Source: Klebsormidium nitens (taxonomy: Eukaryota > Plantae > Klebsormidiophyceae). Taken from it: 64,000 bases of DNA. The translations under genes were made by a program, and so were the position numbers. A model generated the notes under the pieces. The model made no database searches. It was given only the letters and a program-made list of their open reading frames with translations, and was not told where the DNA came from. The DNA lies in the NCBI GenBank assembly GCA_000708835.1, contig DF237146.1, positions 85,127 through 149,126 of the forward strand, read 5' to 3'. Positions 20,935 to 49,229 of this stretch are shown piece by piece. Each line of letters starts with the position of its first letter. Position 1 is the first letter of the stretch.

Positions 20935-21819
20935 GACTATTCCCAAGGGAATGAACTTTAGCATTCCTTTCTTTATTCTAGTGAAACGTCCAACGTCAGA
21001 TGGATGGACGGTTTGGGGCAAGGACGGTCAGGGTTCGCTCTTCTGATGCCGCACTTCTCGGGTTGCGGCATAGGGGCGCTTATACGCAGAGGTTGCGTAT
21101 AAGCAGATGAACACCTTCGGTGAGCGAACCGTGACGTCACCGCTGGACGTTTCTTTGAAAGCCGTTGATACTTTCTTGATTCAAGGGACAGGATGATTTT
21201 TGCGGACGACTCATGCCTGCCGTTGATCAAAATAAAACCAATCTGTATGGTCGAGAGATGGTTCGTGAAATAGTGGTGAGTCACTGACTAGCGCCTGAAC
21301 AAAGCGTTGGTACTGTCACAATTGCAATTGTTTAGTTGATAAGGATGGCGCACGCTAAGAGCGCTTTTCAGCCATGGAAGAAAGCGAGATACCAGGCAGT
21401 GGGCTCTTCTAGTGATGTGCCCTCTCTGGCGCTGGAGGTTTCCACTCCTCCTTTTCAGGGCTATGACCGGAGGTGAGTCTTGTTTCATTCTTTGCTTGGT
21501 GATGAGGGAGGTGGGTGGGAAGAAAGAAAAATGGCGCCCTCTTAGCAGCGCCGAGACGCGCTGCTGCTGCCGCCTCAACTCACAGTGAAGTGAAGAAGAT
21601 TCGACTGCAACTGAGGTTTTGTTCACAATCTTGCTGAGGCTGCCGCCTAGTCAGCAAGTTTCGATTTCGAAGAGGCCAAACCCTGAGGGGAGGGTTTGGC
21701 CGCCGCGGTCGCGCGCGATTCGCACAGGGTTTAGGGCTTTGCCCGGCAGTCTGGTGCCTTAAGGCTTCTCGAGCATCTGATGGCCGTCCACAGATCGGAC
21801 GGACGGCCCGCATTCCTTA
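20935..21819 (-). mobile_element. Short non-autonomous derivative of the DIRS-like element (both termini plus about 470 bp of unrelated filler)
   Basis: About 21530-21819 is the near-identical reverse complement of the element 5' end (42967 to about 43270). 20935-21060 is identical to 52424-52549 (126 bp). No coding remnants seen in the filler. Confidence 0.85.
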
Positions 21820-21821
21820 GG

Positions 21822-22444
21822 TAGAGGTCCCGCCGGCCGTTTCTGTCACAAACAAAACCTCCGACGTGGCCGGGCCGGGTCCGAGCAATCCCCCTTGCAA
21901 TCGCCTGGAAATCTACAGAGTGCACCGGCTGAAGCGAAACGCCCAAGAAGGTTGTGTTGGGGAAAATCGAGTTCGCAACACTGTCCGCAACTTTGTTCTG
22001 GGGGTAGATGCCCCACAGCCAAAGGCTCCCCCGCAAGCGAACAAACGTTATGACCACCCCCCCGGACATGAGCCGTGACCGAAAGCAGCAAACAGCGCAT
22101 CTAGACTCCAGCACAGCGGCTTCCACCCCCTGGCTTTGTTCAACTAGCTTTTTTTTCCGTGCCGCACAACATCGAGCCGCCAACAGTCGTTTGTAACCAC
22201 CCAGAGCTTCTACCGCTGCATCAAGCTTGGCGACCTGTTCTGGGTGATAAGTTTCGGATTCCGAGTCGCCTTGCATATCCTCTGAGACATTGCGAAAGAA
22301 GGCTTCCTTCCAGATTCCTGTATTCTCCGCCGCCGCGCGGTGCAGGGGCGCCAAAGCGCACGTGCTCCGCAGCAAGAACAGGGGATCCAGAGCAGCCAGC
22401 TTGCGAAGGATGATCAGGATTATGTCTTGCGGAAGGCGCTCCAT
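21822..22444 (-). pseudogene. F-box-like paralog B, 5' half (cut by the element insertion)
   Basis: MERLPQDIILIILRKLAALDP...; close to paralog L up to CCT CTA, then switches to element sequence. Also has a 4-nt GGCC deletion just before the break. Confidence 0.9.
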
Positions 22445-22776
22445 GCCTGCGTTTGAACGACTGCCAGATAAACTCCACCCACTGGGCTGAAGGCCGAGTC
22501 TCAGTGCGGCCGCGGGTCCGCAACGCGGCGGCTCGGCGGCCGCGTGTCCAACCGCCGGGCGTGCTTGCTGCCCCGGTCGGGGTTTATGATGCGAAGTGTC
22601 CGCACCAGCGGCCGCAAGTCACGTGCGCGGCCGGGTCCGCGCTCGTGGTGGTCCGCGGCCGCCTAACGCGTTGCGGCCCTGCGCCACCCGGCCGCGCGAT
22701 CGACCACGGCGCACGCGCGGCGGGCCACGGCGCGCTTACAAGCACGCAGAAGTGAAAGAGGGCAGGAAGGGCGGAC

Positions 22777-23170
22777 ATGGAAGCTCTTTCTGGCGACGTG
22801 AATCTGATGGTCCTGCGCAAGCTAGCGCCGCAAGACTCTTCGTCCCTCTCTATGCAAGCAATTTGTGCCTGCCATTCAATTTATTCAGAAGGGCGAAAAA
22901 AGACCCGGCGTCTCAAAGGAAGCGTCCTTTGGAACAGCGGGGATAGCCTGAGCCCAGCAACGACGAGAGCGCGTTAAAGCGCACTTCAGCTCCTGTGGTG
23001 GATATAAGCGACTGGTCGAGGCGCGGTGTGAAGATTGTAATCGTTGGAAACCTGACTCAATCTGAAGAACGCGAAGCGCTCGCCAAATAAGGTGCTCTCG
23101 TCAACTTTGAAAGCAGTACTAGAAAGGCTGGTCATTCTGCGAGACGGAGGGAGATTGCTTCTGTGGCGCC
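22777..23170 (+). pseudogene. F-box-like paralog C, heavily decayed
   Basis: MEALSGDVNLMVLRKLAPQD..; GYKRLVEAR at 23000-23026; RLVILRDGGRLLLW near 23125-23166; separated by stops and frameshifts. Confidence 0.75.
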
Positions 23171-24302
23171 TAGTCTTAACCCGAGAGCAGATGCTGCCCT
23201 GCCACCGGCGTCAGCTGGGCGATTTCGCGGGCCGTTGGGGACCAGATTCTACTTTGCCGACTTACTTCTGATCACATCTCCGCTTGGGCAAGTCCTTTAG
23301 AGACAAGGGCGTTCGGTCTTCTCAGATGTCATTGGAAGCGGACGCGTCGAGCGGAATCGTTTTCTTTTTTGAACGCTACAGCTTCGTGCAGGCAAGGTCG
23401 CAGCCAAGAGTCAACTCATAGAAGCTGGGCCTATAAACTGAGTGCGCCGTCTAGATCTCCGAGGCGTTGGGAAATGTTTCTCAGGAAAAGCTTCACAAGG
23501 TCTACCAGGACAAGAATCCTCATTAGTAGCTCTGAAGAGGCTAATTTGAGACTGCAACACCGCCCTTTCTGCTATACTTACAAATCACCCCTTCCAAGCC
23601 ACGGGTAAATTGTATGGTCGGGCTTCTAAATATCGAAGTCGCGGAAAGTATTGTGCGCATATGATGCAAATTGCTGGCCAGGCAGATCACGTCGGACGTG
23701 CTGGCTCCGAGTGCTTGGCTGCATGGCCGATATATTTAGGCCCGCAATTTCAAACTCGTACCTTAGCAACGGAAAATTTCCGAACATGATGCGCATATTA
23801 TGCATTGCCGAGTCTTTCTTACGTCATGGTGGTCTTGTGAAACGAAATACGACAGTCTGCAAGAGAGAGTAAAGACGAATTTGGAACCAGTTCAAACAAC
23901 GTCGCTATCATAATGCAGACCGTTCAATCAGGCAGCGCCCGTTGCCATACTCTTTTCGCAGGCGTCCTAAAGATCTCGCATTTGCTACGAAAGGGTGAAA
24001 TTAGCTAAGCAAGTTGCACATAGCTGTACTGGATTTCAGCCCAATTGTTCCGGATTGCAATTGAAGAATTCGGGTCTTGCGGAAGAGGTTCAGGACAGAA
24101 CGCAATTGTTGTTTCTTGCATAGTCGGCATACTAGGAACGGGATGGGCGTTGAGCCGACAAATTTCAGAGAACGGTAAAGTAAAAGTCGGAGAGTTCAAC
24201 GAAGCTGCTTTGTCTTTTACAGATCTGGGCAGTCGACGTTTCTTTCAATGCTACCCCTGCCTTGTAAACAGTGCTGTAGAGCATGACGCCTTGACGCCTT
24301 GC

Positions 24303-25226
24303 TTACTTGGATAGCGATTCGAATTTAGATGGACCATTCCCAACCGAGTCTCCAGTTGGGCTGACTCTTTCCCCCGAATATCTCAGATAGGAATGCACGT
24401 CACAAGTTAAGTTCTCCTTATGCGGTTCCAAATGCGAACACAGAACGCCCCGCAAACGATACCATGTAATGGATCCGCCGACCGCCCAAGGTCTCTTCGG
24501 ACGGAGAATTTCACAGCAGGCAAGTTCTGTCAAAGCAGGTGATCTTGTCTCACAGGGTGGAAGTGTGTAGAGTTCTACAGACAGGGGCCCCGGCGGATCA
24601 TTCTCGACGCTGACTCCGATGGATTTGCCAGCAACAGAAGCGTTACGAGTCTGGCTTAATTCTTTCAGTATTGCTTGGGAACTCAAATATCCAGCTGCCG
24701 GGTACACCGGCTGGAGCGAAACGTCCGCAAATCTGTAAGACGCTGAGGTCGTATATGCAGCGTTGTCTGCTACTGTGTGTTCCGGGTAGATGCCCCACAT
24801 CCAAATGCTCCGCCCTAAGCGAACGAGGATCAGGATGATCCCCCCAGAGAAAAGACGCGCCCGAAAGCAGCATGCAGCGCAAAATCCATCCTCTCGTGTA
24901 GAGCGTGCCACCCCTTGGCTTTGTTCAGCACGGTTGATTTGCTTTGCCGCACAGCATCGGGCTATCAACAGTCGTTTGTACCCACCCAGAGCTTCCACCT
25001 TTGCATCCAATTTTACACCTTCCTCTGACTTGTGAATCTCAGACTGACAACTGTCTTGCACAGCCGTCGCTGAGCCACAAAACGCTTCCTTCCAAACGTC
25101 TGGATTTTCTGCCGCGGCGCGGTAGAAGGGCGCCAAATCACACGTGCTTCGCAACAACGAGAGGGGGTCCAGAGCAGCCAGCTTGCGGAGGGTGACCAAG
25201 ATCAGCTCGTTCGGAAGGCGCTCCAT
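24303..25226 (-). CDS. F-box-like paralog D, intact intronless 307 aa
   Basis: Open ORF; LPNELILVTLRKLAALDPLSLLRSTC..VWKEAF..LGGYKRL..GPLSVELY. Confidence 0.85.
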   Translation of the reverse strand: MERLPNELILVTLRKLAALDPLSLLRSTCDLAPFYRAAAENPDVWKEAFCGSATAVQDSCQSEIHKSEEGVKLDAKVEALGGYKRLLIARCCAAKQINRAEQSQGVARSTREDGFCAACCFRARLFSGGIILILVRLGRSIWMWGIYPEHTVADNAAYTTSASYRFADVSLQPVYPAAGYLSSQAILKELSQTRNASVAGKSIGVSVENDPPGPLSVELYTLPPCETRSPALTELACCEILRPKRPWAVGGSITWYRLRGVLCSHLEPHKENLTCDVHSYLRYSGERVSPTGDSVGNGPSKFESLSK

Positions 25227-25589
25227 GCCTGCGCTCAGAACGTCATGGGAGAACAGTACAAAGACTAGTAAACATCATCTGATGGTCGATACTCAGCGCG
25301 GCCGTGGGTCAAACCGGCGCGACTGGCCGCTCGTCGACCCAACGGGCGCGGCCGCGGGTTCTCTGGCGCGGCCGCGGCCGGTTTAGACGCGGCCGCCAAA
25401 GCCTCGCCTCCCACTCGTCGCGCGGCGGCGCGCGCGCACCCTGAGCCTTTTGCCGCCCAAGTGCGAATGTCGCTTTGGAAGGCGCCGCGCGCCTGGCTGC
25501 GTAACCAAAGGACGAGCGAAGGGCGCAGCAGAAGACTCAAATGGCTCAAGCACTTTGTGGATGTGGATAAAGCGGGAGTATAGCTCGTC

Positions 25590-26370
25590 ATGGAGGATCT
25601 ACCAAGCGAACTGGTAAGGGTCATCCTGTATAAGCTTGCGGCGCAGGATCTTCCCTCCTTGTTGCGGGCCACGTGTGCGTGGAAAGGTTTTCACCTGGAG
25701 GTAAAGGGAAGTCCTGAGATCTGGAAGGAAGCCTTTTGCGGCGGAAACTCGGGGCTTGCAGACGAGAAACCGGAAGCTGAGATCATGTTGTTGGGTGGGT
25801 ACAAGCGGCTGGTCAAAGCTCGGTGGGAGAATAGCCTTTGTTTGAAACCTGAACAAACACAAGGCCTAGGATGGGTCGCACCAAGTGAACCCAAGTTCTC
25901 ATATCTCGATTTGACCAGGAGTACTCACTACAAGTTCCTTGTCTTGATGAGAGAGCAAAGCAGGATCCTGTTATATATGGGGGTTGCTGATCCGCACGCC
26001 GTCAAGGCAGAAGACGCTCGGGGATTTCACCTTCAGATCCATAGTACATAGCCCTTATTCTAGTAGACTGAGAAAACCATCTTCTGTTGATCTCGAACTT
26101 TCTTTGTCTACTTCGGGGTTAGAGTCTCTCTTTTTCCAAGCACGCCCGACTTGCGGGAAGGGTTCGAAAGGACAGAAGAGCCTCAGGGTTGGAAGCGACC
26201 AGGTAATGCAGGGTCCTTTATTCGTGGACCTGTACCACTTTCGCCAGCCGCAAAGTAACCCAAGCTTGAGAGACGCAAAGACCTGGTTGTGTGAAATATA
26301 TCGTGGGCGAGACGATGCAGACGTTCCGGCATTTACGTTCGATGGACGTTTAATTTCCGTAGTTCTTTGA
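25590..26370 (+). pseudogene. F-box-like paralog E, frameshifted
   Basis: Family WG motif (IWGLLIRTPS) lies in a shifted frame at about 25971-25978; the C-terminal half (GPLFVDLY..KTWLCEIY) is in the 25984-26370 ORF. Confidence 0.85.
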
Positions 26371-27436
26371 TGTGAGCGAACGTTCTGAAAAACAATACAA
26401 ACCTCAATATTTGGCAGCTCTGGTCTCCACGTGTGCGCAGTCAAGGACAACGCCGGCGCCTAATTGGATAAGCAGTGGGACAGGACAGTCTCGCCTTAAA
26501 AGTGACATGGAAGACCCGTTTGTCACGGCGGTTATACATATTTGAACAAGGTCATGTTGCAAGTGGAAAAGTTTTGCGCGCGACTCGAGCCTCGATTCCT
26601 GATAGAACAGGAAGACCTGAGAAAACGTTTTGGTATTTTGTATCAACTATGATATTATGCATTCTTCCTACGCGCGTCAAAAAAGGAGTCAGGATAAAAT
26701 ACCCGTCCATGAAAAGCGTGCATAACTCATCCGAAAAAGATGGTTCAGGCTGTAAACACGATTCATCATGCAAAGCAGAAGTTGCATGTGTTCCGACACC
26801 CGATTACTTCTGCTTCTTTATGCAAGCAAGAGACTAATTAAGACTCCAAGAAAAGACGATCGTACTGTAAATCTGAATTAAGGAATCTAGATGCTAATAA
26901 ATCTCTTCGTCCCTCTTCTGGAAGTCGCACCATGTTCCAGACTTCGTTTTCATGATCAGCCCGGCAGCTTTACCACCCACTTGACACTTGTCGTCAATCG
27001 CTACCTCTGCATGGCATAGGGCAGGCCGCCTGGTCAATAGGAAGATCAGACTCATGATTAACCAAGGCCTTTGATCATTCACCCTCTCTCCAAAAATCTG
27101 CAAAACTCCGTTGCGTTTGCTCATGGGCGATCATATCAAAGATGGGCGCAGGCAGAACGCTTTAGCCCGCAGGTCCTAACTAGCGAACGGGGCCGTGAGC
27201 ACGGTTCCTTGGGCGATACCGCGTTTGATTTTGACCCGCGGCCGCTGAAGCGCCCTCCTGGGCCAGGCGGCCGCCCAACGTTTTGTCCAGGCGTGGCAAA
27301 AGCGGCCGCATGACACCGATAAAACCCCACGTCGCGTCGCGGCCGCGGACGCGCTTCGAAGGACGCGCAGATCAGCAACATCTCAATGGCGCCCTGCAAA
27401 AGTGAACAGAGTTTCGAGCAGAAGCAAAGCGCGACA

Positions 27437-28192
27437 ATGGAGATTCTGCCAGGCGAACTAGTGCGGGTCGTTCTGTCGAAGCTGGCGGCGCAGGACCCTC
27501 CATCATTGCTGCGGGCCACGTGTGCCTGCAAAGCCATTTACCGGGAGGTGGAAGGAGACTCTAAATTTTGGAAGGATGGATTCTTCGGCGGAGATTCAGA
27601 TATTGGAGAGCACTGCAAAGACGAGAGCCTGGAAGCTGAGATTTTGTTGGTAGGGGGGTACAAGCGGCTAGTGAAAGCTCGGTGGGAGGTGACAGAGTCC
27701 TCGGGTTTTGAACGAAGCCGGGAGTTGCTTTCACCGTGTAGTTCCAAGACTTCCAGTTTTGATGGAAGTAGAGAAATTAACGTCAAATACCTTGTCCTGG
27801 TGAGAGACCAGAAGAGGCTCATCTTGTGGGGCTTCTTAAAGTTCACGCCATCGGGGGACGTTAATCTCGGCGATTTGACACTCACTGCTGTGAGTCTCAG
27901 AGCTTCTACTCGGGGCGACGTTCGACTTTATCTGAGTACTTCGCGGATCGAGCCGCTTTGTTCAAATACTTGCACGAGTACCGAAGAGGTGTGGGAAGGA
28001 CAAAGCAGGATGGTCGGTAGCAACTGTATACTGCAAGGGCCAGTCTCCCTGGAAAGATACGATTTCCAGGAACCTCAAAGTAATCCAAAGAATCCTGAAA
28101 GCTGGTTATGTCACACATATGTAGGACACGGTAAAAAAGTCTGGTCAGTGGACCTTTCTGGACGTTTCCTTTCCGTGGGTCCTGCGCTTTGA
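27437..28192 (+). CDS. F-box-like paralog F, intact intronless
   Basis: Open ORF; MEILPGELVRVVLSKLAAQDPPSLLRATCACK..FWKDGF..VGGYKRL..LWG..GPVSLERY. Confidence 0.85.
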   Translation: MEILPGELVRVVLSKLAAQDPPSLLRATCACKAIYREVEGDSKFWKDGFFGGDSDIGEHCKDESLEAEILLVGGYKRLVKARWEVTESSGFERSRELLSPCSSKTSSFDGSREINVKYLVLVRDQKRLILWGFLKFTPSGDVNLGDLTLTAVSLRASTRGDVRLYLSTSRIEPLCSNTCTSTEEVWEGQSRMVGSNCILQGPVSLERYDFQEPQSNPKNPESWLCHTYVGHGKKVWSVDLSGRFLSVGPAL

Positions 28193-29738
28193 GGAGACAA
28201 AACGTGAGGGCATACGTTGCCCATACGTTGGGAGGATTCTTCTGTAACTCGGAGATCAAGTGGTAAGACTTGGAGTTGTTAAGGAAGGCGGAGCCTCAAA
28301 AGATTGTAACAGATTGCGAACAAAAAGCACAGAGGTCTTCAGCTTTCTATCTTGCCTTTTAAATCCGACAACGGGTTTAAGAGGAGTTCTGATTCCCAAA
28401 CTTAACCAGGCAGGATGCTTTAGAGTGCCACTGGAATTGCATTTCCACTCATCTTCAAGAGGTCTGGCGCTGGCTATGCATAAGAAAGTCGTCAAATGTG
28501 CTTTGACATTATGTCGCAAGACGTGATCGAGATTTGGAAGCCTTAAGAGAACGGCTGTCCTCTTGATTTGACGTACTCTGGGGTCATGATATCCCATGAG
28601 ACTTGCGGCCCACTCTTAGTTTCTTGTAAGTATACTAATCAAAAGATCGAGGCAGCGCCTTCGTTGGCATGGTGCAATGGGGCAGACAGTGGCCCAAGGA
28701 TATTGCGCGTTTATGTGTAACCAAGACGATTAGGCAATGCGAAGCTTCTCATTTGCTCTCAGCTCTCAACCTTCTATTAGCTTAATGCATGATTGCATGC
28801 GGTTGGTTCGAAGGGCTGCGCTCCGAACACATTCGGGTCGAACAGAAGCGGCCCAACGGCTTCAGCCATGACATTGCTACAATCAATGCTCTCGCGCGCA
28901 TGAATGGAAGCATCTGTACTCTTAGGATAAGTGCCAGAGCTATCCGTTTCTGCGTTCATACTACTTTTTAAACGGCAACTTGAAACATGCGTACATCTTC
29001 CAATTCGCCCTGATTGGAGAGTCCGATTCCGTATCTCGCGAATAACTCTTTGATTCGCAATGATCGATGTCCAAAAGATCCAGGGAAGGCGCGTACTCTA
29101 GGAGCGAATTCTGCAACCCATGAATAGTGACTTGCCAGTATGGATATCCTTGTCGGTTGCCCGTGCCAGTGCAGTGGGCCCTTCTGAATTGAATCTGAGC
29201 GCGGTGCATGATATCGATTTCGACGTGACCAGGGAAAGAGAGAGCATGTGATATTTTGTGTGTGTATTGTATGACCCGCCGCACACTCTCTTCACAGCTG
29301 TCGTCAATCGGTACCTCTGGCGTTAGGGCAGGCCGCCTGCCAGATGAGCTAGAAGATCGGTCTTTAATTTTCGAGGCTTCTCATTCACTCCCTCTCAATA
29401 ATCTGATAACAATCCCTGGCAATCAATCATGACAGTAATATTTTAGACGGGCTGCACAGGCAGAACGCTTTCGCCAGCAGGTCCGAAGCGGCGCGGCAAC
29501 GAAAGCGGAACCGAAAAAGCGAACGGGCCGTGAACGCGCGCGCGGTTCCATGGGCGTTTACTTCGAACCGCGGCCGGAGCGCCCTCGTTTTGCCTAGGCA
29601 CATCTTACCTCCACTGCGTAACATCCACAAAACCCCAAGTCCGGTCGCGGCCGCGGCCGCGCTTCGAAGGCCGCGCAGATCTGCAACGTCTCATGGAGTG
29701 CGAAGTCAGCAGAGTTTCGAGCAGAAGCAAAGCGCGCT

Positions 29739-30510
29739 ATGGAGACCCTACCTGGCGAAATAGTGCGGGTCGTTCTGTGGAAGCTAGCAGTGCAGGACCC
29801 TACGTCATTGCTCCGGGCCAGGTGTGTTTGCAAAGCCTTTCACCGAGAGGTGGAACGAACTCCTAAGATTTGGAAGGATGCATTCTTGGGCGGAGACTCA
29901 GATCTTGGAGAGCACTGCAGAGACGAGATCCTGGAATACGAGATTGAGATGATAGGGGGGTACAAGCGGCTGGTGAAAGCTTGGTGGGAGAAGACAAATA
30001 TTTTGGATTCTGAACAAACCCAGGGGGTGCATCCATCGTGTGCATCGATATCATTCTCTTTTGTAGGACGTAGAGATATTCCCATCAATTACCTTGACTT
30101 GATGGTTCGAGCAAAAGAGGCTCATCTTCGGGGGCTTGCTCAAGCATACGCCATCAGCGAATGCGGATCTCGACGATCTGACCCTCAAGTCTGTGAGTTT
30201 CAGTGCTACTCCTCCTGGAGACGTTAAATTTTATCTGGTTACCTCGGCTCTGGTTACCCTAGAGCCGCTCTCTCCTACAGCTCTCACGAGTCCCGGCGAA
30301 CTTGAAGCGTTGGAGGGGCAGACCAGATTTGCTGGCAGCAATTACCTTGTGCAGGGGCCAGTTTCCCTGGAGATATACGATTTCCAAGAATCTCACAGTA
30401 ATCCGAAGAAACCGAAGACCTGGTCGTGCAAAATATTCGTAGGACAAGATACTGAAGATTTAGCATTTGAACTTTCTGGACGTTTCTTTTCTGTGGGCTT
30501 TTCACTTTGA
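29739..30510 (+). pseudogene. F-box-like paralog G, frameshifted
   Basis: 2-nt deletion near 30108-30118 relative to F (AGA GAC CAG AAG AGG versus CGA GC AA AAG AGG); the C-terminal half is in the 30136-30510 ORF. Confidence 0.85.
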
Positions 30511-32022
30511 GGAGACAAGGCCAGTTATTTTGCATACTTCCTGACCGTAGTTCTAGGTTTTTGTCACAATTCATGACAGAGAACGGGGCGTGGTCAGGGA
30601 GTCTCATGAGAATCTTGGCAATCAGCCAGCTTGGCAGGCGTCTTTAAGGGCGGGCTGCGTAAGAATTTGAAAACCTGGTCCGCGCTGTAGAGTGCAAAAA
30701 AGACTTTCAGATTATGAGTTTTTCACATCGGAGCCGTCACTGAAATTTGCAAAAGCGCATCCACCTTTTTCTCAAACCCGGTATGCTACTTCGCTTTCAT
30801 CCGTCGACGGGGTCCTTGAAAATGTTGTGAAGCAGACTTGGACAAGAGAGGCGTGCATGATCACTATGATGCGACTGGGTCAGATTGCCAATTGCTCATC
30901 TGAGATGTGAAAACGAGCCATCTATAGCTAGAAAACTGCGATCGCGTACTTCGACTGACGTCGCAACTCAATTGTTTGAGCGCCAAAATGATTGGTACCA
31001 CAACTGTCAATTATCTGGAAGGGCTCTCTCTTTCAGTCGAAGTGGATGCATTCCGATCCTTTTGCTTTCTTTGGTGCCTCTGTCGGACCGACTCTATGAG
31101 GCTGGCAATCCCAGCGGACACGACGTCAAATGTTTTTTAAACATATAGAGAGGCGATTAAGAGATAAATATGATGGTGATTTAGACAGTCACGGTAGTCT
31201 AGTAGTACCGTTCCGCCATTTCTCCAGAGACGGATGAGGCTTAAGCGGTTTATATTCCGGACGGTTGCGGGCGGAACGTCGCATCCGCTTTGGTGCGCGT
31301 CGAATCGAGACGGATCAAAATGGATGAATCCACACGGACTTGTTAGTAGATAAATGTAAGTTTGTATTCTTTCAACGACGTCCTGATCCGCTATCCAATT
31401 GTGCCTCGACAGTGCTCTGCTATTGGCAACAATGACTAGCGTTCCACTAGCGTACATCCTCAAGATAGATTAACGTCTGGGGTGCCCTGTCGTACCTGCT
31501 TGATGAAAATCAATCGCTTTCAAGCAATGATCAACGTCATTCCGGCAGACTTTTCTGACATGTAGCTTGACGTGACCAGCTTGCCGGAACGCAAACAATA
31601 TTCTGTACGCAATTTAATATGTGCATAGGTAGTGTGACCAGCTTTAGAAGTACGAAAGCAGCTGGCGGTGGGTATATTCTGACGGGGCGCGCCGCCGCCG
31701 CAAACATTCGCGCGCGCCGCGCGGCCTGGCCGCCATTGGCAGGCCCGGGTACTACCGCGCGGCGCGCGGCCGGCGACAGGCCCGGGGCGCGTGTGCCGGC
31801 CGACCCAAACCGTTACCAAACCCCTGGCAAAACCGCGCGGCGCGTCCGCAGCGCGGCCGCGCGGGTGTACGTTGGCCGCCGGTCCGAGCGGCCCGCGCGC
31901 GACGACGTCTCCGCCATCCTTTTACTTCCAACTCTTGAACAAAAGCAGTCCTTTAGTCCTCGGAGTGTATTTCTTGCCGCTTTCACCACCGGTTAAAGAG
32001 GCAGATTTTGGTAAGAGGAAGG

Positions 32023-34570
32023 ATGGCGTCCGGCATGCAAGGGGGAAAAGGAAGGGTTCCGCTGGCGCGGTACTGGAGCCTCGCTCTAATGACCTGCTGT
32101 TGGACAGGTTCGGTTATGGCGACGTTCATTCTTTGAAAAGCATATGCATGTGAATATCACTTTGAGGTCAACTTTAACTTTTGCCCTTTGACGTGATAAC
32201 ATCAATCTTCATCAGAGATTCACTCTTTTCTGTCTCACTTTGTGTTGCATGTAAGCTACCTGATCATGGTCAGATCCGTTATACGGATCAGGGTAGGGGC
32301 ACTGCCACCAAGCTTTTCAAGGACTCATCATGGACAGTCAAAAGATTCCAGACGTTTGCGCAACTGCAAGTTTTTGGTCGACCCTGATATTTGTTCGGGA
32401 CCAGGTTTTCAGCGAAACAAACGTTCACAACATACTAAAGGTGACTTGCAGCCGTCTCAGGATCTTAAAACCTAGGCTCATGTTCAATAACGGGGTAATT
32501 GCATGATATTTGCACTTATCGTTGCTTCACTAGTCATGTTTGGTCAGTCTGCCGCTCGAGGATGTATGATCAGGAAACCAAACTTCCTTTCCTTGTCTGC
32601 AGTTCTCATTTGTCCCAATGTTTCCAACGCCCAAGCTCTCCCCGCCAACCAGTCGCTTCCGGAGCCGACCCTGGTGAATGAGTTCCTGCTTAGCAACCAG
32701 TTGAACTGGACCAATCCAGTGCTCGGGAAACCTCCCCGACCGCTCCAAGTGATCAAGTGCCAATCGCTGACAAAACCGGTGTACGACTTCTATCGAATCG
32801 AGGCACCCACGAATACTTGTCAGATCCCGCCTCCTGTTGTGAACGTTCTCCACCCCAAGCACACTCCCAAAGTGCTCCGCATCCTTCTGGGCATAACCAT
32901 CTTCCTCGGCGTTGTCATCGACGGCCTGGTATTTTTCTGGATGGTTTGGGGAGCGTTGCTCTTCGCTTTGTTCGGGGCTCTCACAATCCTATTCTCACAA
33001 TCCTAGCGCTAGTCGGTGGCCTCCTGATTTTCCTGCTGAGTTGGATCTGCTGTTGCTCTTTCCACTTCGATAAGAGCGAAGACTCTCTGGAGGCCCCAGA
33101 CGTAGAGCCACCGAGACTTGCGCCAATCAGGGACAATGACGTCACCAGTGGCAATAAAGCGGTTGATGATTGGGCCCGAATCGAGTCATTGAAGTCCGAG
33201 ATTGGCTGGTCGAACCATAATGACAGTGCAAAAGCAGAGCACACTTTCAGTTGGGAACCGGCCAACGAGTTCAACCCCTTCAGTCTCAGCTACACTAGCG
33301 AGCTGCAAGCAGAGGCTGCCAGCACGCAAGGACACGTGGCAGCTTCTCCGACAGCCGCAACTGACGTCAGACCTCAACCGGTGACTCTTTCCACCGGCCA
33401 GTCCGGGTCGGGATCGAATTCAGACCAGCAAACGCCCCCGGTGGTCTGCTTTAAGACCAAAGAAGGGAAGAAGGCCAGAAAGCGCAACCCACTCTGTCAA
33501 GGACTTCTGATTTTGACCTATGTCGTCACCTTGCCGGTGCTCGTTTACCTTATTATTTCGGTTGCTCGCATGGTGCCGGGAGGGGTCAAGTGCTTCACCA
33601 CGGATACCAGAGTGGAGCGACTGGGGCCGGTGCCTCTACCCGATCCCGCAAAAGGTATGATCTTTCCTGATGGGCACATTGTTTTCTGAAATCAACGCGG
33701 TGAATTCGCAGAGGGTTCTGCTGAGACCTCCTTTTGTTAGCCACGGCCTTGGCCAAGACTTTCGCATACCAGAGTACAAGCGGGAGGTTCTAACTCCTGA
33801 GCTCGTTGTTTGTTGAAAGTAAAGACGCGTCGTCACGTTCTGAATGACGTCTTTCCGTCCTTTTTCGATCTTACCTTGGTTAAAGGAGCACCGTACTGCT
33901 AAAGGTGATTGAAGTGAATAAACCTTCATGTATCTGCTGGACGTCAGAATTTCGATAAATTCATCAGGCGAGTCGAAATCAGCACGAGTTCGCACCTCAG
34001 GTTGCAGCAGCTTCTCCCGCGGCGTCTGAACAAAAGTGGTGGGCTTAAAACCGATCATCTGGTTGAGAAGTATTGAACCCTGCAGATGCATCTCTAGCCC
34101 AGATTTGGACATTGGCAGATTCATTCTCTACTTTAAATACAGTAGGAGCCGTAACTGACATCCTGTGCATGACTCCTTGCCCAGGTTTGAACCAGTACCT
34201 GGCGTCTAGGTCCAACGGGACCAGCCTGACTCTTCAGTCCTGCAAGAACGACCGCTTGCAAATCTACGCTCTCGCTCCGGACGGCTGCGGACGTCTGGCG
34301 GATCCGTACGGCGGCCGCTCACCGGACAACGAGCTGCCGGCCCGTATCCGCGCCATGTGTCCAAAGTTACTGAACGCGTGGAGTGCGAAGGATTTGGTTT
34401 ATGGCGCGCTACCGTGCTTGGCGATGGCGATAGCCAGCTGGTTTCTGGTACTGGACTGCTCGTTACCCCTGTGCGAGTGCGAGGAGTGTAAGAAGAAGCG
34501 GCAGAGGCGGGCGGAAGTTGCGACACAGACGGAGGAAGCTCCGCGTCAGCAACCTGGAGGGGCTGTCTAA
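32023..34570 (+). pseudogene. Signal-peptide, multi-pass membrane protein of unknown function, frameshifted by a 14-nt duplication
   Basis: Exons 32023-32107, 32603-33654 and 34143-34570 join in phase 1; several hydrophobic segments; TCTCACAATCCTA is repeated with period 14 at 32979-33005. Confidence 0.7.
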
Positions 34571-35293
34571 CATCCGCGGGCAGTGAGAAGAGGATATTGT
34601 CTGAAGAGGATAAGTGTGCGTAGATCTTGTTTGTGTGTCAAGGCTTGGACGTCGCGGTCGGGGTTCGTTACAGCAGTGACGGCATTAGTCGTCAGAGTAG
34701 TCGTTGCATAGTCCTCTGGAAGTCCTGCCTTGCAGAAGTTGCTGTAGTAGATAAACGGTTTTTCCATTACTCTCTGTCGAGACCTTCTGATTCGACTATT
34801 TCGTTCTCCAGAATTCTACTTTGGAAATGGACACTTGCGGCAGTATGTTTATCCAATAATCATCCCACTAGGCATTCTTTTAAGTCTTGATTGAAAACGC
34901 GCTTATTAATCACGACAAGAAGCTGATTGCTGGAGGATTCCAGGAATGCCGATGGAGGCTGCAGCCATGTTCGACGATTGCAATTTTCAACCAGCATGGG
35001 CGGAATGGTTGAAAGGTAATCCGGCTTACTCAGAGGCATGTCCTTGACGTTTTCCAACCAATTTGAAACGCGGCCAGATTGAAACGTAGGTCAAAAAAAG
35101 CGCGCAAACTAACACGGCCGCACCTTCAGCCGGGATAGCATCTCGAGCGCCCATCATCGTCGAACCCACTAACAACGTCATCAGAACCAAATCACCTTCG
35201 CGAGCGTGGAAATGACAAAAGCATGAGACCCGTCTGCCATTTATACTCGTGGCGTTGCTTCAAGAATCCTCAAGACCAAGCAAGCGGTCTGAG

Positions 35294-35384
35294 GCTCAGG
35301 CCCCATCTTTCTCTGCGGATTCCGTGCCCCTGCAAGCTTTTCTACGTGCAATTCTAGAGAATCCTGTCGTCTGGAAGGAAGCGT
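35294..35384 (+). pseudogene. Decayed F-box N-terminal stub upstream of paralog H
   Basis: gctcagg..ccccatct..ctgcgg..ctgcaagct..gtcgtctggaaggaagcgt aligns to the start of H. Confidence 0.6.
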
Positions 35385-35818
35385 GAGAAGGCCTTGCGCC
35401 GCTTGAAAATCCGCACCAACCGCAGAGCCTCGGACCGGCCGGCCGACGGCTGGCCGCGACGTCGTCAACGCGCGGGCACGCTACCGAAAGGACATGACAT
35501 CAAGCGCCGCGCGTGGCCGCGTTCTGGCGCAGCGTGGAAGGGCCGTCGCGAACGCGCAGCCGCGCGCGTCGGCGTCGGCACTGCCTTGAAATGGCGCCGC
35601 CGCGGTTATCCGGTCGCCGGGTAGTAGCGCGCGCTAGACGCGGCCCCCACTTTCCCACCGCGACTGCACTCGCGGCCGCTCGAGCGCCCACCAGACTAGA
35701 TCGACCCTACCTAAGTTGGCGACGCGCTAGAGCAAACAGGTTTAAAGCCTGGCCTCGGGCCGCCTGCTAAACAAATCGAAGCGTTGGCTTTTGCCAGGCA
35801 GCTGGGACAGCGCCAAAT

Positions 35819-36745
35819 ATGGAAGATCTTCCCAGCGACTTACTTTTGATCGTCCTTCGCAAGCTAGCGGCTCAGGACCCCATCTCTTTGCTGCGGGCCA
35901 CGTGCGCCTGCAAGCTGATTCTTCGGGTGACTGAGGAGAACCCAATCGTCTGGAAGGAAGCGTTTCTTGGGTCGGCGCCCACTGAACAAAACACGGGCGG
36001 TCTTGATGCTTACGTCACGTGTGCTGAGCTGGATGAGCGGGTGGATCGGCTGGGAGGGTATAAGCAGCTAGCGCTGATCAAAGCAGGTCGTCAGGGATTG
36101 TCCAATTCAAAAGTGGGGTCTGCTCTTCAAGAAAGCATCAGCAGCAAATTAGATGCCGACTTCGAGAGCAACCTTTTCCGGTTTCTGGCTGTCTTTAGAC
36201 AGCGAGGCCATCTTCTTTGGGCTGCCGGTTACACTGAGAAGCCAAAGTCACTCACCGACTATTTAGCCTTTGTTCAGCTACCAGAGAAAGGCGACGGTAA
36301 TTCTGGTGGAGCCTGTAGAATTCAAACTTTGAGTGTTCTCGACCTTGTCCCAGTCTACTTACCTGCTTCATGCAACAAGCTGGCAGCAAATCGGTCAGCA
36401 GGTACACGAAGAGGCATAAACGCGGAAGGAGAGAGTCTGGAAGATTTCAAGAATGGGAAGATTAACGTAGAGGTCTTTATATCGCTAAACAGAGGTTCCG
36501 TCCATCCGAGCAAGGTTTTCTCGCAAAGCTTCAGGCCTTGGCCATGGGATAGCAGAATTCTCATCGACCGCGACGCCTCTACCAAATCTGTGGCAGTAGC
36601 CGAAGCACAGGGGTTCTTCATCTTCGAAGACCCTGACCGACTTCAAAATGACTGGCTGTTCAAGTTTACAGTAATGATTGCGGCGGCTGGGATCCTTGGC
36701 AAGGCGCTACAGCATATGCGGGGGTGGATCTTGGGACATCCGTAA
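35819..36745 (+). CDS. F-box-like paralog H, intact intronless 308 aa
   Basis: Open ORF; MEDLPSDLLLIVLRKLAAQDPISLLRATCACK..VWKEAF..LGGYKQL. Confidence 0.87.
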   Translation: MEDLPSDLLLIVLRKLAAQDPISLLRATCACKLILRVTEENPIVWKEAFLGSAPTEQNTGGLDAYVTCAELDERVDRLGGYKQLALIKAGRQGLSNSKVGSALQESISSKLDADFESNLFRFLAVFRQRGHLLWAAGYTEKPKSLTDYLAFVQLPEKGDGNSGGACRIQTLSVLDLVPVYLPASCNKLAANRSAGTRRGINAEGESLEDFKNGKINVEVFISLNRGSVHPSKVFSQSFRPWPWDSRILIDRDASTKSVAVAEAQGFFIFEDPDRLQNDWLFKFTVMIAAAGILGKALQHMRGWILGHP

Positions 36746-38085
36746 TCTGTTCTTAGCTCCTTGATAAGATAAGATTAGTTTCAAGAAAGGTGCTGTGTTC
36801 ATTTCTGAGCGAGCTCTCATGACAGATTCAATCTGCTCTTTGCTCCGTTGAGCTCAATCGATAGAACTTGGATTCAAGACGTACATGTGATATTCTGATG
36901 ACTGGACTTGTTATCTGATACACGAGAGTTCTTGACGAGTAAAGGAAAAGTGGCACTATTCTCCGGGCATGGATGCGACAGGAAAACAATGGGGATGTTT
37001 GCAGCAGCCTAAGTTAAAATGTGCCCAATAATACTGACCGTTCGTACCCGTCCGCTTTCAGCGGTAACGGGCCGAGACTTGGTTGGTGTCCCAGTGAATC
37101 AAATATTTACATGAGCGCTTTTGCTGCTAATGGAAGTGCATAATTGAGGAGCAGCCGTTTGGTACTGCAGAACACGCTTCTCAACAAACATCAAATGCTC
37201 GATCGCGCATATTCTTCCCTCGTTTTCCCTCTCAGCAGCTCGACTAATTGTTTGTCTAGCTCGCGCAACATCGATCGGTGGGCGACAGCAAGATTTGTGA
37301 CCATCACGAAATTGCACGTTGAACGGATTTCTTTCTGTTTTGCAACATTAGGCGCTTGGCATCTTCCCGGAAAATTGTACTGCGCGTAAAACGAAGAAGT
37401 TCCTTACATCTAGCTCGCCCTTTTGACATTCGCATCCAATCCTGCATGTTTTATGTTTTGTGGGCAGTATCGTACCATTACGCATGCGCAACATGACGAG
37501 TGTGAGATCTTCTGCTATCGACGACCGTGTGACAGGCTACTGAGGGTGACAACAGCAGAACACCGATCCACATTCAACACCTATATTAGTATCTGTACTG
37601 GCACGATACTGTTTGCTTAGCCTCAAGCAAAACACAGTTTGGCACCTTGGAAACAGGTTCGTCGGAGGCAAAGGAATGAGAGCCGAATGACAGCAACTTA
37701 GGCGCTTCGTCTTTGCTCTCAGACGAGTGAGAGTGAGCCTGTCTGGGAACGTGCTTCGCGGCCGCGTGCCAGCTGGCGGCGGCCGCCGCGCCACTGGTCC
37801 GGTCAATCACGTCCGACCGTGACGCGGCCGCGCGGACGCGCGCATGCAACTAGTCACACGCGGAAAGCGCCCGCCGCGGCCGCGCCGCGGCCCTACGTGT
37901 TCCGCCCGACGTACTGACTCTCTCCCACCGCGGCCGCGACAATACCAGAGCGGCGCTGTTTTTCAGTTGACAAAGATGCACGCCATCAGACTCAGCAGAA
38001 GGGTAGCCGCACTCACGCTTGCGTGGAGACTCTGCTCAGTAAGGTGGGCTTCTTATGATCCGCCACCAGGTCATACATCCAAGGC

Positions 38086-39134
38086 ATGGAGCGCCTTCCA
38101 AGCGACGTGGTCCTGGCAATTTTGTTCAAGCTAGCGGTGCAGGACCCCCTTTCTTTACTGCGGGCGACCCTAGTCAGCAAGTCGATCTTTGAACTGACGA
38201 ATAAGACTCCTGCCATCTGGGGAGAAGCCTTCTTTGCGCCTTATCGTCAAGACATGACAACGATTCCGTTTGTAGATATGGAATATCTGGACGCTGCAAC
38301 TGTTGAGCACGGCGGGTACAAGCCGCTAGTGTTAGCGAAAGCCAGGCAATCGCAATCAGCGGCGAAACAAGGAGGTTTTACAACAAACCAGAAACATTCA
38401 CGTTCTGGTTTTGAACAAATCAGGAAACGCATCTTGCTCCAAGGAAGGTGTACCTTGTTCCCCAAGTCAAAGGTAGTCCATCAGAAGAAAGCTAGACTTT
38501 TGTAGCTGCAGAGTCAGGATAAGAGTTTGTTCAAGGCCAGCAGGTGGGTCCGCATGACAGCACACGCCCTTTCGATCGATCCTACATGCTTCATTCTCAT
38601 ATGTGGATCCTCGCCGTCCGTTCGTCCCTTATGGAAGTGCTACGTTGATCTGCATGTGACAGCGTTCCTCGAAGTAACCAACCTGCTGTCACTTCAGTAG
38701 CGATGTGTTGTTTGGGTCCCCGTATCCGGTTTGAAAAAAGTACAGTCTCGTATCTTGGGGACAAGGGCCGTGTTGCGATTGTAAGCGGAAGTCTAGGAGC
38801 ACGCGCGCAGTTACCCGTTTCGATTACTTTAAGATACGCATCCGTGAATGTGCTGGACGAGGTCTTCAGCATTCCTTTCCTTTCTTCAGTATCTCAGCAC
38901 GGTATCGACTTACGTCGTTCATGCTTAAAACCCTTGAGCGGCCCCAGACTGTTTGTTATCATCAGGTTGAACTTGCACACGAGAGGGTTTGAATTTCACT
39001 TGACTTCAAACGCACTGAAAGTTTGCCAGCAAGCCGCTCTGCCGCGTTTCAGCTCGTTTCCTAATTCACACAGTTCATTACGTTGGAATTCCACGCATGC
39101 AGAATCTACTTTCGTGGGCAGAAACCCAATCTAA
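38086..39134 (+). pseudogene. F-box-like paralog I, premature stop at 38503-38505 and later frameshift
   Basis: N-terminus is close to paralog A. The downstream 38703-39134 frame (VSITLRYASVNVLDEV) resembles the A C-terminus (LSIELYAYVTIQGDV). Confidence 0.72.
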
Positions 39135-40281
39135 TAGAGTGACGGGAGTAGCACCCTAAGATAAATCAGCGAGTCATGTATGGAATTCGTCAACAAGGGG
39201 TCAACAAAAACGCGCCTGTGGTACCATCAAATTACAGTTGAATAGAAAGTCACATAAGGCGTTTTGGCATCTTGAAAGGCGGGAGAAGAAAGGAAAGCGA
39301 GGCTGAGTTCCTTTTCATGCTTATGGGTCAGTATAATAAGACGTCTTTGGAAGGTTGGCGATGCCAGACGTTGAGAAAGGAGGTGCCCGAACGGCGCGCG
39401 GCCGCGTTCCTGGGGCGGCAGCTGGCGCCGCGCGCGAGCCCCAGATGCAGGATCGCAAGCGTGCGCGCAACCAGGCGCGAGCGTCCCCGCAACTAAGACG
39501 TACTACTCAGCTATACATAAACCCGCGTAGCATGTTCCAGTGGGCATTGCGAGATACCCATGATCAATCCGATTATAATTTCCAGCTACATATTCAACCA
39601 TTATGCGCTGCTCCGTCACAACTGGATGCATGTCTGTCGCGTGTTGGATTTGCACTTTCAAGCTCGACAACCTATAGGTACATGATTGGCACTGTTTGAA
39701 TCAAAGCGGTTCTATAGCTTGAGGCTTTGCGTCGCCCGTTCTTTATTCCGAGCGCTACTGTTTCGAGTGACCAGTTACCTGCCAACGCTTACGTTTAAGT
39801 GGCGCAAAGCGGATACAGCAACCGTCATGAGTTTGTTTCTCGGTCTTTCCCAACGAGCCGTCAGAATCTGTGGCAGCCCGGCCGCTTTGCAGAACCTCAG
39901 TGAGAAGCTTCGTAAGAAGCTTCGACCTGGGCCATGTTCATGCCACCGCGGGGGCGGCCGGACGACCAAGTGGCTTTTACAATAACACAAAGTAGCTTTT
40001 TCACACCGACCACAAGTGGCTTTTCTACACGGACCACAAGCGGATATTCACACCGACCACAATCAGGGACCTGAAGCCGGGCTGCAAGTCGCCTCCACTT
40101 CCGAGCGGCTTTTGCAACTTTAGCTAGCTAGGATTAAGAGCTGGGTCTGCGAACTCGTTCTCTAACTCGGCACTTGCGTAGTTAAGTGTTGATGATTGAA
40201 ACTTCCTCGAAGCGGCAAGTCGGTGACCGACGATTAGGCTTGGGCTTTGCAGACCTCCGAAAGCCTTAAACTTGTATCTTG

Positions 40282-40348
40282 CTTCGCAAGCTGAGCGGCC
40301 GAGGACCCAAGTCGGAATCCTTGTTTCAGGCTTCGGCACCTGCAAGCT
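40282..40348 (+). pseudogene. Decayed F-box N-terminal stub upstream of paralog J
   Basis: cttcgcaagctgagcggccgaggaccc..cacctgcaagct matches the RKLAAQDP..CK coding sequence with indels. Confidence 0.5.
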
Positions 40349-40422
40349 CTTCATTTTGAACGGCAGTTATTTTTCATCCCCAGGCACATGCAGGAACGGC
40401 GTGTGTCTAAGAAAGCGCGCTG

Positions 40423-40480
40423 GACGCGGCCGCGTTTTCGGCCGTGGTCGTGACGCGGCCGCGTTTTCGGCCGTGGTCGT
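40423..40480 (+). repeat. Perfect 29-nt tandem duplication in the paralog J promoter
   Basis: gacgcggccgcgttttcggccgtggtcgt twice. Confidence 0.95.
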
Positions 40481-40657
40481 ACCGCGGCCGCTCGAGCGCC
40501 CACCAAACTTATTCATCTTCAATATTGCAAGACGTCATGTGAACAAACCGCACTGCCAAGCGAGACCTTATAGCGGGTGCCACATGTGGCGACGATGCTT
40601 CAAGCACGGTGCTTCAAGTAGACAAGTTGTCTACCTTGAACGTCAGCGGGGCCGGGC

Positions 40658-41470
40658 ATGGAGAATCTTCCGAACGACGTACTTTTGATCGTCGTTCGCA
40701 AGCTAGCGGCTCAGGACCCCGTCTCCTTGCTGAGAGCCACTTGCTCCTGCAAGCATTTACTTCGGGTAACGGAGGGGAACCGCGTCGTGTGGAAAGAGGC
40801 GTTTCTTGGGTCGGCGCCCACTGAACAAAACACGGAGGTTCGCGATGCTTACGTCACTTGTGCTGAGCTGGATGTGGAGGTGGATAGCCTGGGAGGGTAC
40901 AAGCAGCTGGCGCTGATCAGAGCAGGACGTCAGCGAAACTCCATATCAGATTCGTGGTTCCTTTTTAACCAATTCAGTCCCGGAAATAGCAGAGCTTCTA
41001 TTGTTGATGCGAGCATCGTGGCCCGGTGTCTTCTTCTGTTCAGACAGCAGGGAAACATGTTCTGGACTGCCCATGCTGCTGGAACAAAATTGTTTCAAGA
41101 CTACGCAGCGTTTGGTCTACCGAACACTGGCGACCGGGCGTATGGCATCAGAACTGTGAATCCTCTCGACCTTCTCCCAGCCTACGTGTTTGCTCCATGC
41201 GACAAGGCAGAAAATGCGGGAAGAAGAAGCTCGGTCCAGATCAACGATGGGAGGATGCATGTGGAGGCTTACCTGTCCTTGAACAAAGATCCTATCCACC
41301 CAGCAAGGTTTTGCTCACGAATAATTGAACCTTGGCCGTGGGAGTGCGACGTTGTTGTGAAGAGCAACGACATTGCTGAAGACGTTCTCGTAGGCGAAGT
41401 TACGGGCTGCCTCGTCTATCAGGACCCCGACCCCCATGATCCAAACGACTGGTTTTATAAGGGTGCATAA
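40658..41470 (+). CDS. F-box-like paralog J, intact intronless 270 aa
   Basis: Open ORF; close paralog of H (shared SAPTEQNT..DAYVTCAELD). Confidence 0.87.
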   Translation: MENLPNDVLLIVVRKLAAQDPVSLLRATCSCKHLLRVTEGNRVVWKEAFLGSAPTEQNTEVRDAYVTCAELDVEVDSLGGYKQLALIRAGRQRNSISDSWFLFNQFSPGNSRASIVDASIVARCLLLFRQQGNMFWTAHAAGTKLFQDYAAFGLPNTGDRAYGIRTVNPLDLLPAYVFAPCDKAENAGRRSSVQINDGRMHVEAYLSLNKDPIHPARFCSRIIEPWPWECDVVVKSNDIAEDVLVGEVTGCLVYQDPDPHDPNDWFYKGA

Positions 41471-43162
41471 GATGGCAATCATAATCTGAGCGGTTGAAGT
41501 CTTGGCAAGGCCCTTCGGCCAATGTGGGGTGGCCCCTCAAGACTCCTCGTGCTCAAATTTCTCGCTAACTTTAGCTCATCGAATACTCCTCCAGACACCA
41601 TTGAAGTTCTTGTCCTAGGAGTGCGGCAACAGGCTGTGTAAAAAATGCAATTCAAGTCGGGGTACTTTTTGGGGGCTAAGACGCAGACGGATCTAACCAA
41701 AGGCGGCTCTCCCTGTCATATTTTTGTATCTTGAATCTAGTGGAAGTTTTCAGTGCTAGATTACACTTCAAGGTCTTGAAACGCAAAGAAGGATCTCGAT
41801 TGCATCTGCTTCGCTTGGCCTTTTTGTCAGGTTGCGCCTGTCAATGTATTGAACCGGGAGCCATGGTGTGTCTGGTGACCTTGCAAAATAAACTTTGTGG
41901 GCATGTGTAATTTGTGAGCACGTCAATGGTCTGCGCTTGGTATTCCACCTCCGCAAGAACTGCTTCTCTGTCAGCAATTCACGCTCCCTGCCACCGACTG
42001 GTGCTATTCTGGCATGTTCACTGTGCATCACGCTAGAACGAAGCTAGCGGATGTTATATAATCCGCTGAAGATGAGCAAGCCTCCGTTCAGAGATGCCCT
42101 TATGAATTGACTAGACACAGGATGGGCAGTGATTTGAATCTCTCTCTTTTGCCGACCTGGGTGTAATACTGCATCAACGTATGGACGAAATACTTGCTCC
42201 AATATGCCCGATGATTTTTTGAGACCAGATATGAACCCTCAGTTCTCATGACTTCCAAACAGCCATTAATGCACCGCAGACAAACCAATTGTTGAGCGGT
42301 CGGGTCACAAGCAATCATCCAAGCGAGCTTGATTGACATCCCCGTCCATCATTTAGCAGCAACGGTAGATCAGTGAAAAACGAACGGTTGAAATTACTTT
42401 TTCTGTCTTTTTGCTGCAAATTGTTCTGGACGTGGAGAAGCAGCTGTTGGGGCTACTGCGAGACCCGCGTTTCCTTAATGAGAAAAAGGGCTTCAGGGAT
42501 CACATCCCGTATTTTCTCAATTTCTAAACGATCACAATACGACTGAACCAGGATCCCTGTAATTAGCGGCGGCAGTCCGTATTGAAGAACAAGTACGAAG
42601 TGGCTGAGATCTTGCCAGCGGCTCGAACCGCTACGCGTAAAACGTTCTCATATGCTCGCGTTCCTGGGAATCTTAAACAGTTTTATCGACTTGCGCATGT
42701 TTCATGACGTGGGCGGTAATCCAAGATGGAACGAAGTGACGGAAGTTCGACTTTTCTTGTCACCGTCCCTGCATGTATGTTGCCAGTCTAGGCTACGAGC
42801 AGATGATCACAATCACACAGTAGTGCCGTGCCGACAGAACGGTGCGCTTAGCCAGCTGGAGGCCGCCTGAAGCGAGACATACGGGGCGAAGTTTGAAACC
42901 TTCAAGAGAGGAACTTGGAAAGAACGAACGAGAGCGGACTGAGAGCGAGTCCGGTTCCCTTTGACGTAAGGAATGCGGGCCGTCCGTCCGATCTGTGGAC
43001 GGCCATCAGATGCTCGAGAAGTCTTAAGGCACCAGACTGCCGGGCAAAGCCCTAAACCCTGTGCGAATCGCGCGCGACCGCGGCGGCCAAACCCTCCCCT
43101 CAGGGTTTGGCCTCTTCGAATTCGAAACTTGCTGAGTACTAGGCGGCAGCCTCAGCAAGATT

Positions 43163-49156: not shown

Positions 49157-49229
49157 TTATGTACAGTTTGTAGGTAAACTGAAGCACAGGTTTAGCAGTA
49201 CAAACCTAGCTAAACCCTCTGAACCCTGA

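Follow-up and report, generated by a model that had tools for sequence, protein, structure and literature searches.

The window discussed here, that is, the whole analysed stretch of 64,000 nucleotides (nt), comes from the alga Klebsormidium nitens (GCA_000708835.1, contig DF237146.1, positions 85,127-149,126 of the forward strand), whose assembly was built by Newbler from 454 and Illumina reads (PMC4052687). It contains an array of F-box-like genes in which one gene is split in two and 21 kb of host DNA is apparently inverted, together with the dispersed pieces of a retrotransposon encoding a predicted tyrosine recombinase (YR). The two repeats of about 300 bp that border the inverted DNA are most likely repeats A2 and A1 of one element with split direct repeats, not the marks of two copies. 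Recombination in cis, catalysed by the YR of that element at its internal junction between repeats B1 and A2, is the probable cause of the split. All results rest on the assembled sequence and on related loci, the two-exon YR and NUP42 models being judged exon by exon. Among these loci, L001, L006, L020 and L021 are from K. nitens, and L003, L022 and L023 are from another Klebsormidium (metagenome assembly); the K. nitens copies L001, L020 and L021 extend past their contig ends. For the open reading frames (ORFs) of the window, no exact protein was found on record. The F-box-like genes concerned are:

19712-20615, minus strand: F-box-like gene A, frameshifted, sister of I (tree, domain search)
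21820-22444, minus strand: F-box-like gene B, 5' half; 85% to paralog L; PF00646 weak (E 0.025); sister of L (99/99)
51640-52423, minus strand: F-box-like gene B, 3' half and downstream DNA; 75% to 59074-59898; seamless join to 21820
35819-36745, plus strand: F-box-like gene H, sister of J (tree)
38086-38505, plus strand: F-box gene I (first ORF), sister of A (tree); PF12937 at 25.7 bits, above the cut-off
40658-41470, plus strand: F-box-like gene J, sister of H (tree)
59074-60524, minus strand: paralog L, uninterrupted by an element and the reference for the empty target site of gene B (self-comparison, alignment)

Gene B is the interrupted member of the array. When its halves are rejoined (21820 to 52423), they are collinear with paralog L over 59074-60524, at ~81% on either side of the join. 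A tree built from the initial 360 nt of 12 F-box-like copies recovers the pairs A+I (100/100), H+J (100/99) and B+L (99/99), which bears out the resemblance of A to I and of J to H in the original prediction. The sharing of a 16-mer by the promoters of A and I is also real, ccgcggccgcgacaat being present only upstream of A (20732) and of I (37928). Flipping the segment between the repeats restores the order H-I-J-A, as had been supposed, and this order would fit as the ancestral one; the flip of 21820-42966 alone, however, leaves gene B broken, and a second inversion (49160-52866) is needed.

In the domain search, PF12937 was matched above the cut-off by I and K and below threshold by A, E, F, H and J; no match was obtained for C and D. 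Genes E and F, together with their upstream DNA, form a tandem duplication of 70-75% (26974-30518), and decayed F-box-like fragments lie beside B (22777-23055) and H (35293-35384).

Element parts and class

Comparison of the window with itself recovers the inverted repeat, previously described as about 290 bp at ~97% identity, at 21520-21822 and 42964-43269 (97.4% over 306 nt); its exact units, 21521-21819 and 42967-43268, differ by 4 substitutions and one 3-nt gap. It also reveals a direct repeat absent from the original prediction, 20935-21060 being identical to 52424-52549. The element body (42967-49156) carries gag, pol with a frameshift and, on the opposite strand, the tyrosine recombinase gene. 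With YR treated further below, the parts of the element are:

20935-21060, minus strand: repeat B2, 3' end of the element; outer end abuts the promoter of gene A; identical to 52424-52549 (B is 136-139 nt in relatives)
21061-21519, minus strand: A2-B2 spacer of the element, 459 nt (339-644 nt in relatives); its terminal 11-mer is GCCCCTATGCC, as in the spacers of L022 and L023
21521-21819, minus strand: repeat A2; start joined to the 5' half of gene B (junction analysis)
42967-43268, plus strand: repeat A1, 5' end of the element; its start, TAAGGAATGCGGGCC, recurs in the related K. nitens copy L001
43340-44119, plus strand: gag-like ORF; tblastn matches, same position in L001-L003; no Pfam match
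45491-48012, plus strand: pol with a reverse transcriptase (RT), an RNase H-like part (RH) and a probable methyltransferase (MT), frameshifted near 46650; RVT_1 E 0.0057
52424-52549, minus strand: repeat B1; end joined to the 3' half of gene B (repeat comparison)

The intact relatives L003, L022 and L023 measure 7.76-8.08 kb and have the order A1-ORFs-B1-A2-spacer-B2, which is also found in L007, with a truncated A1. When the window is read against this plan, 21521-21819 is taken as A2 and 42967-43268 as A1 of one element. The original prediction had assumed two element copies; A1, B1, A2, the spacer, B2 and the ORFs, however, each occur once in the window and add up to exactly one element of 7,568 nt (A 302, spacer 459, B 126), with sizes matching those of the intact relatives. 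Displaced host DNA, moved by two overlapping inversions, was also considered for 21061-21519 and discarded, the relatives identifying this stretch as element spacer. Over its whole length, alignment of the window spacer to those of the relatives was not significant. Near its B2 end, the spacer contains a hairpin with an 11-bp stem and a 5-nt loop (21077-21104).

The split direct repeats and the predicted antisense YR place the element among the PAT-like YR retrotransposons, for which this plan is typical (PMC3266345, PMC4157794). A DIRS-like nature, as previously proposed, was given up on the same characters, and a DIRS1-like type, with inverted terminal repeats and an internal complementary region, was rejected, since the intact relatives have direct repeats; the inverted pair in the window would stem from the rearrangement. 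RVT_1 is present in 15 of the 20 aligned family members (best E 2.9e-12), with weak RNase H-like matches; as to the methyltransferase, Dam was matched in one homologue only (E 1e-5) and not by the window protein. The gag query found no match in the 90% collection, and no useful loci came from scanning metagenomes with gene B or the RT alignment. A target-site duplication is absent, the empty gene-B site being collinear with paralog L; a short core is shared instead (AG in relatives). In L003, L022 and L023, this 2-nt core AG lies at the internal B1-A2 junction as well as at the host-A1 and B2-host junctions.

The YR gene is distributed over three places:

21345-21472, plus strand: predicted YR exon 1 (ATG, 42 codons, phase-2 GT donor), placed as in L003, L022, L023 and L006
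52614-52866, plus strand: start of YR exon 2 (phase-2 acceptor), 84 codons; 18 codons missing before the YR of the body resumes
48312-49156, minus strand: middle and C-terminal part of YR, opposite in strand to pol; frameshift near 48800, break at ~49159 (homologues, domain and fold matches)

The YR frame opens at a phase-2 acceptor in the window (52614) as in L003, L022, L023 and L006, and this fits the phase-2 donor in the spacer. The predicted intron would thus span A2 and B1 including their junction, a two-exon layout conserved in the same four loci. Because the piece at 52614-52866 and that in the body lie 18 codons apart without overlap when set against five intact homologues, they are regarded as one gene broken once. 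In the window, and in every relative where YR can be seen, the gene runs antisense to pol. Its assignment draws on an HSFRR motif and a late tyrosine in the alignment, on PF00589 in 3/6 family members (E 1.6e-5, below the curated cut-off) and on a structure model (mean pLDDT 66) whose top fold match, a weak one, is Cre (E 6e-3); sequence searches of the PDB with YR were blank or marginal.

A proposed split at the internal junction and its rivals

According to the accepted model, a circular copy integrates by its end-to-end B-A junction at a few shared bases, a core of 2-3 in the host site, and without duplication (PMC3266345, PMC7192593). An integrated split-repeat element would retain one copy of this integration junction inside, at B1-A2. 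We propose that a single PAT-like element (A1-gag-pol-antisense YR-B1-A2-spacer-B2, ~7.6 kb) was inserted between J, on its 3' side, and the promoter of A, and that its YR turned the B1-A2 junction to use once more, on a site of opposite orientation in gene B ~28 kb away. Such an exchange would join the 5' half of B to A2 and B1 to the 3' half of B, inverting 21.1 kb of host DNA together with A1-ORFs-B1. Alternatively, both junctions of one incoming circle might have been used, a route with an identical and hence indistinguishable product. Since the junction lies in the predicted YR intron, this first event would separate the YR exons, 1 from 2, disabling the element and ending its own supply of recombinase. 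A later inversion of 3.7 kb (49160-52866) would have broken YR again, with the loss of ~54 nt. The two segments are:

21820-42966, unstranded: host segment inverted by the proposed first event, 21,147 nt; 5' half of B, genes C-F, H, I and J (the present order follows from the inferred ancestor by two inversions)
49160-52866, unstranded: second inversion, ~3.7 kb; promoter-like DNA, gene K, 3' half of B, B1, N-terminal YR piece and an 80-N scaffold gap

With the element portion included, the first inversion covers 27.8 kb, of which 21,147 nt are host DNA. Applied in turn to the inferred ancestor, the inversion from the B1-A2 junction to gene B and that of 49160-52866 yield exactly the assembled order. 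The first exchange was reciprocal at single-base resolution: the rejoined gene B has neither extra nor missing nucleotides. The swapped flanks noticed earlier are confirmed, the halves of B being collinear with paralog L and B1 on the 3' half leading to a YR piece 18 codons from the YR of the body. The crossovers, however, lie at the B-A junctions and not, as had been thought, inside the homologous 5' ends of two copies. Participation of the element's own tyrosine recombinase, already raised in the original prediction, appears to hold up, and we infer catalysis from the base-precise reciprocal exchange at the B-A junction. The target in gene B has CT in common with the inferred B1-A2 junction, and its GGAAT is in register with the start of A. 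A1 and A2 now border the 21 kb as inverted repeats, and homologous recombination between them could flip the segment back.

Just past the core, host targets are often similar to the beginning of repeat A, with 4-6 of 10 bases agreeing in 5/7 sites (among L022, L023, L003 and the window at 52400-52424), a likeness that, in this small sample, hints at half-site recognition of host targets.

Host repair of one element offers a different explanation for the same joints: a break at the semi-palindromic B1-A2 junction would have been joined to gene B with the help of 1-2 microhomologous bases. Inverted arms (CATTCC ... GGAATG) do flank the junction, and the second inversion shows that repeat-free inversions happen at this locus. 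That inversion, by contrast, lost ~54 nt, whereas the first exchange is reciprocal to the base, lies at the element's own integration ends (L001, L003, L022, L023) and has its like at two loci. We therefore hold host repair to be very improbable.

The second of these loci, L006 (DF237566.1, K. nitens; 573-8912), consists of a reversed B2, the spacer, a reversed A2, 478 bp of host DNA, A1, the ORFs and B1. It shows a second element split at B1-A2, here around an inverted host segment of 478 bp. The element is of a different family (~58% nt identity in pol), each of the four host junctions has the AG core of that family, and across the rebuilt empty site a GTAC-rich run continues unbroken. Its B1 and B2 differ by a 24-nt indel. 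The split element lies just upstream of a SARAF-family gene. The chance of an independent second insertion, per copy in 104 Mb, is ~4e-4 within 21 kb and ~9e-6 within 478 bp; the proximity of the halves at both loci would be explained directly by action in cis.

The same final sequence could also be reached, in the version nearest to the original prediction, from two insertions of opposite orientation, at J/A and in gene B, of which one was reduced to a solo A-spacer-B or arrived in that state and the other lost A2-spacer-B2 by recombination of B1 with B2, homologous recombination between the 300-bp A repeats then inverting the 21 kb. Solo AB repeats exist in Ngaro (PMC8547959), SIRE corresponds to the A2-B2 region of VIPER (PMC6681497), and the 4 substitutions and the gap between A1 and A2 are differences that separate copies could show. 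Yet a divergence of 2-8% between A1 and A2 is also seen inside individual intact relatives, two full copies would offer 7 kb of homology favouring other products, and this route calls for two neighbouring insertions and two deletions that complement each other exactly, and this on two occasions, in two families. In place of two copies each with its own ends, only one set of parts was found, with which two reduced copies would be compatible. On balance, this origin appears unlikely.

Several observations speak against a split of one element by its own YR. The evidence is drawn from an assembly (Newbler, 454/Illumina), and among elements with visible ends, those of K. nitens are split in 2/2 cases vs 0/4 in the metagenome relative, which could reflect assembly bias. 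Recombinase activity of these elements is only predicted, and ordinary recombination is known to yield solo A-B repeats (PMC8547959, PMC6681497). Since no intact B1-A2 junction of the exact family of the window element was found, the junction sequence of this family is deduced. At the J/A site, the CT core is missing, with G on one side and CA on the other, and comparison for intergenic homology gave no confirmation of an empty J/A site. Of the expected homology of 36746-38085 to 41471-42966 plus the reverse complement of 20613-20934, only motif matches of 20-22 nt (E 0.003) and one 66-nt match at 68% (E 0.008) emerged. Because intergenic homology is undetectable, the adjacency of J and A rests on the paralog tree and the anatomy of the element.

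The short-read Newbler assembly and the excess of split cases over those in another assembly likewise favour an artefact, in which the segment between the 300-bp repeats is misoriented (the true arrangement being a solo A-spacer-B at J/A and A-ORFs-B in gene B, with the 21 kb uninverted) or two complete adjacent copies have been collapsed. 454 Titanium reads, however, should span repeats of 126 and 302 nt, there are no N gaps at the element junctions, and A1 and A2 can be distinguished at 5 places, as can B1 and B2 of L006 by their indel. The 6.2-kb body has been assembled without gaps between unique flanks, as single-copy DNA would be, and the junctions of the second inversion are unique sequence. 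Misorientation alone would, moreover, leave complementary halves that still need a common origin. An artefact is thus considered improbable, and YR-catalysed recombination in cis, with one element split at B1-A2, is retained as the probable reading.

Surrounding genes and the second inversion

No repeats border the second inversion, at which ~54 nt of YR are lost. It adjoins a nucleoporin gene:

52990-57340, plus strand: NUP42-like nucleoporin gene; ATG 124 nt from the right breakpoint of the second inversion (ortholog in L005)

The ortholog in the relative L005 matches Amo1_N weakly and FG-repeats faintly. NUP42 now has YR coding sequence upstream; if the 3.7-kb inversion were undone, it would be directly preceded by promoter-like DNA bearing GCGGCCGC (49160-49330 on the minus strand, 52867-52990). 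The promoter-like stretch 49160-49906 has no similarity to the upstream region of NUP42 in the relative, and its former link to the gene is therefore unproven. Just before gene K, inverted repeats of 37 bp (89%) bracket ~440 bp (49664-50099) that include the 80-N gap, a MITE-like arrangement.

In L005, which is from another Klebsormidium, the ortholog of the gene at ~4280-7097 (minus strand) stands head to head with NUP42 at a distance of 1.1 kb (L005:4553-5664). The same interval in the window (7098-52990) is 46 kb long and holds the F-box array; because of this difference, the array is regarded as lineage-specific at this place. An outgroup for the order of the array was not found.

Frameshifts were noted in gene A (~20290-20350), pol (~46650), YR (~48800) and paralog L (~60460), some of which may be 454 homopolymer errors. 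The window further contains a direct duplication of 90 bp (15745-15834 and 15908-15997, 97% identity) and a tandem repeat array (61762-62347) with copies 72-89% alike.

Significance and comparison with known systems

In the literature searched, whose coverage left out most subscription journals, no account was found of a reused internal junction that inverts host DNA, and the present case suggests an undescribed way for split-repeat elements to rearrange genomes. Tentatively, and with confidence that falls somewhat short of an even balance, we extend this to every split-direct-repeat YR retrotransposon, which may carry a spare usable site at B1-A2. Its reuse on nearby host DNA would be a regular source of inversions, or of deletions where the target is direct, and of some solo A-B or SIRE-like remnants; in this algal group, with the site in the YR intron, each event would switch the element off.

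Ideas on how recombinases of the DIRS order select their DNA and join it depend largely on a model; for DIRS-1, the circle junction was not amplifiable and YR specificity was uninvestigated (PMC7192593). An exchange at the internal junction that is reciprocal and precise to the base would be a natural footprint of the YR reaction, and since it names the donor site and the host targets, the integration model becomes directly testable. If true, it would constitute a retroelement counterpart to alternative transposition, causing gene knock-outs and local inversions. A further caution is that inverted repeats paired at breakpoints need not mark two copies and may both belong to a single element. 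For the F-box array the consequences are small, with a single gene split and a single block flipped; the rearrangement engine in a diversifying cluster that had been envisaged is reduced to one event, in which one F-box gene was knocked out and the element's YR would have been disabled.

The closest systems are PAT, TOC, kangaroo and a PAT form of Daphnia pulex (PMC4157794), which have the same gag, RT/RH, MT (only probable here) and YR, an A1-B1-A2-B2 plan, YR on the opposite strand, and a short shared core without target-site duplication. The "novel" PAT form of D. pulex has its internal repeats next to the 3' terminal repeat, as here. Kangaroo likewise has an inverted YR, but its internal repeats lie between MT and YR (PMC4157794), while here B1-A2 is located beyond the start of YR. 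Unlike in these PAT-like systems, the first YR exon is predicted to lie within the A2-B2 spacer of 340-640 nt, and the intron to extend over A2 and B1. Short ORF-less A-spacer-B remnants are also known, namely the solo AB repeats of Ngaro (PMC8547959) and SIRE of VIPER (PMC6681497). They have been interpreted as the outcome of A1 x A2 recombination, of degeneration or of non-autonomous mobility, whereas here the exact complement is nearby, inverted and with swapped flanks.

The nearest parallel to the proposed event is the alternative or intramolecular transposition of DNA transposons. In that of maize Ac/Ds and of bacterial IS26 and Tn10, the element's own enzyme attacks a nearby target in cis, which results in an inversion with one breakpoint at the element end; these systems use DDE transposases and make target duplications. 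The window, by contrast, involves a retroelement, a predicted tyrosine recombinase and an internal junction, and the element would have split itself. Ectopic homologous recombination of inverted transposon copies produces the same inverted repeats bordering a segment, with swapped flanks, but leaves two whole or chimeric copies, whereas here the parts make one element and the joints lie at the ends of B and A. Inversions by Cre/lox and those driven by archaeal integrases (PMC5495485) have in common with the proposed event the reciprocal exchange between opposite sites and, weakly, a Cre-like fold; in the window, however, one site would be a true site and the other a host look-alike, and the event appears to have been one-off and self-disabling.

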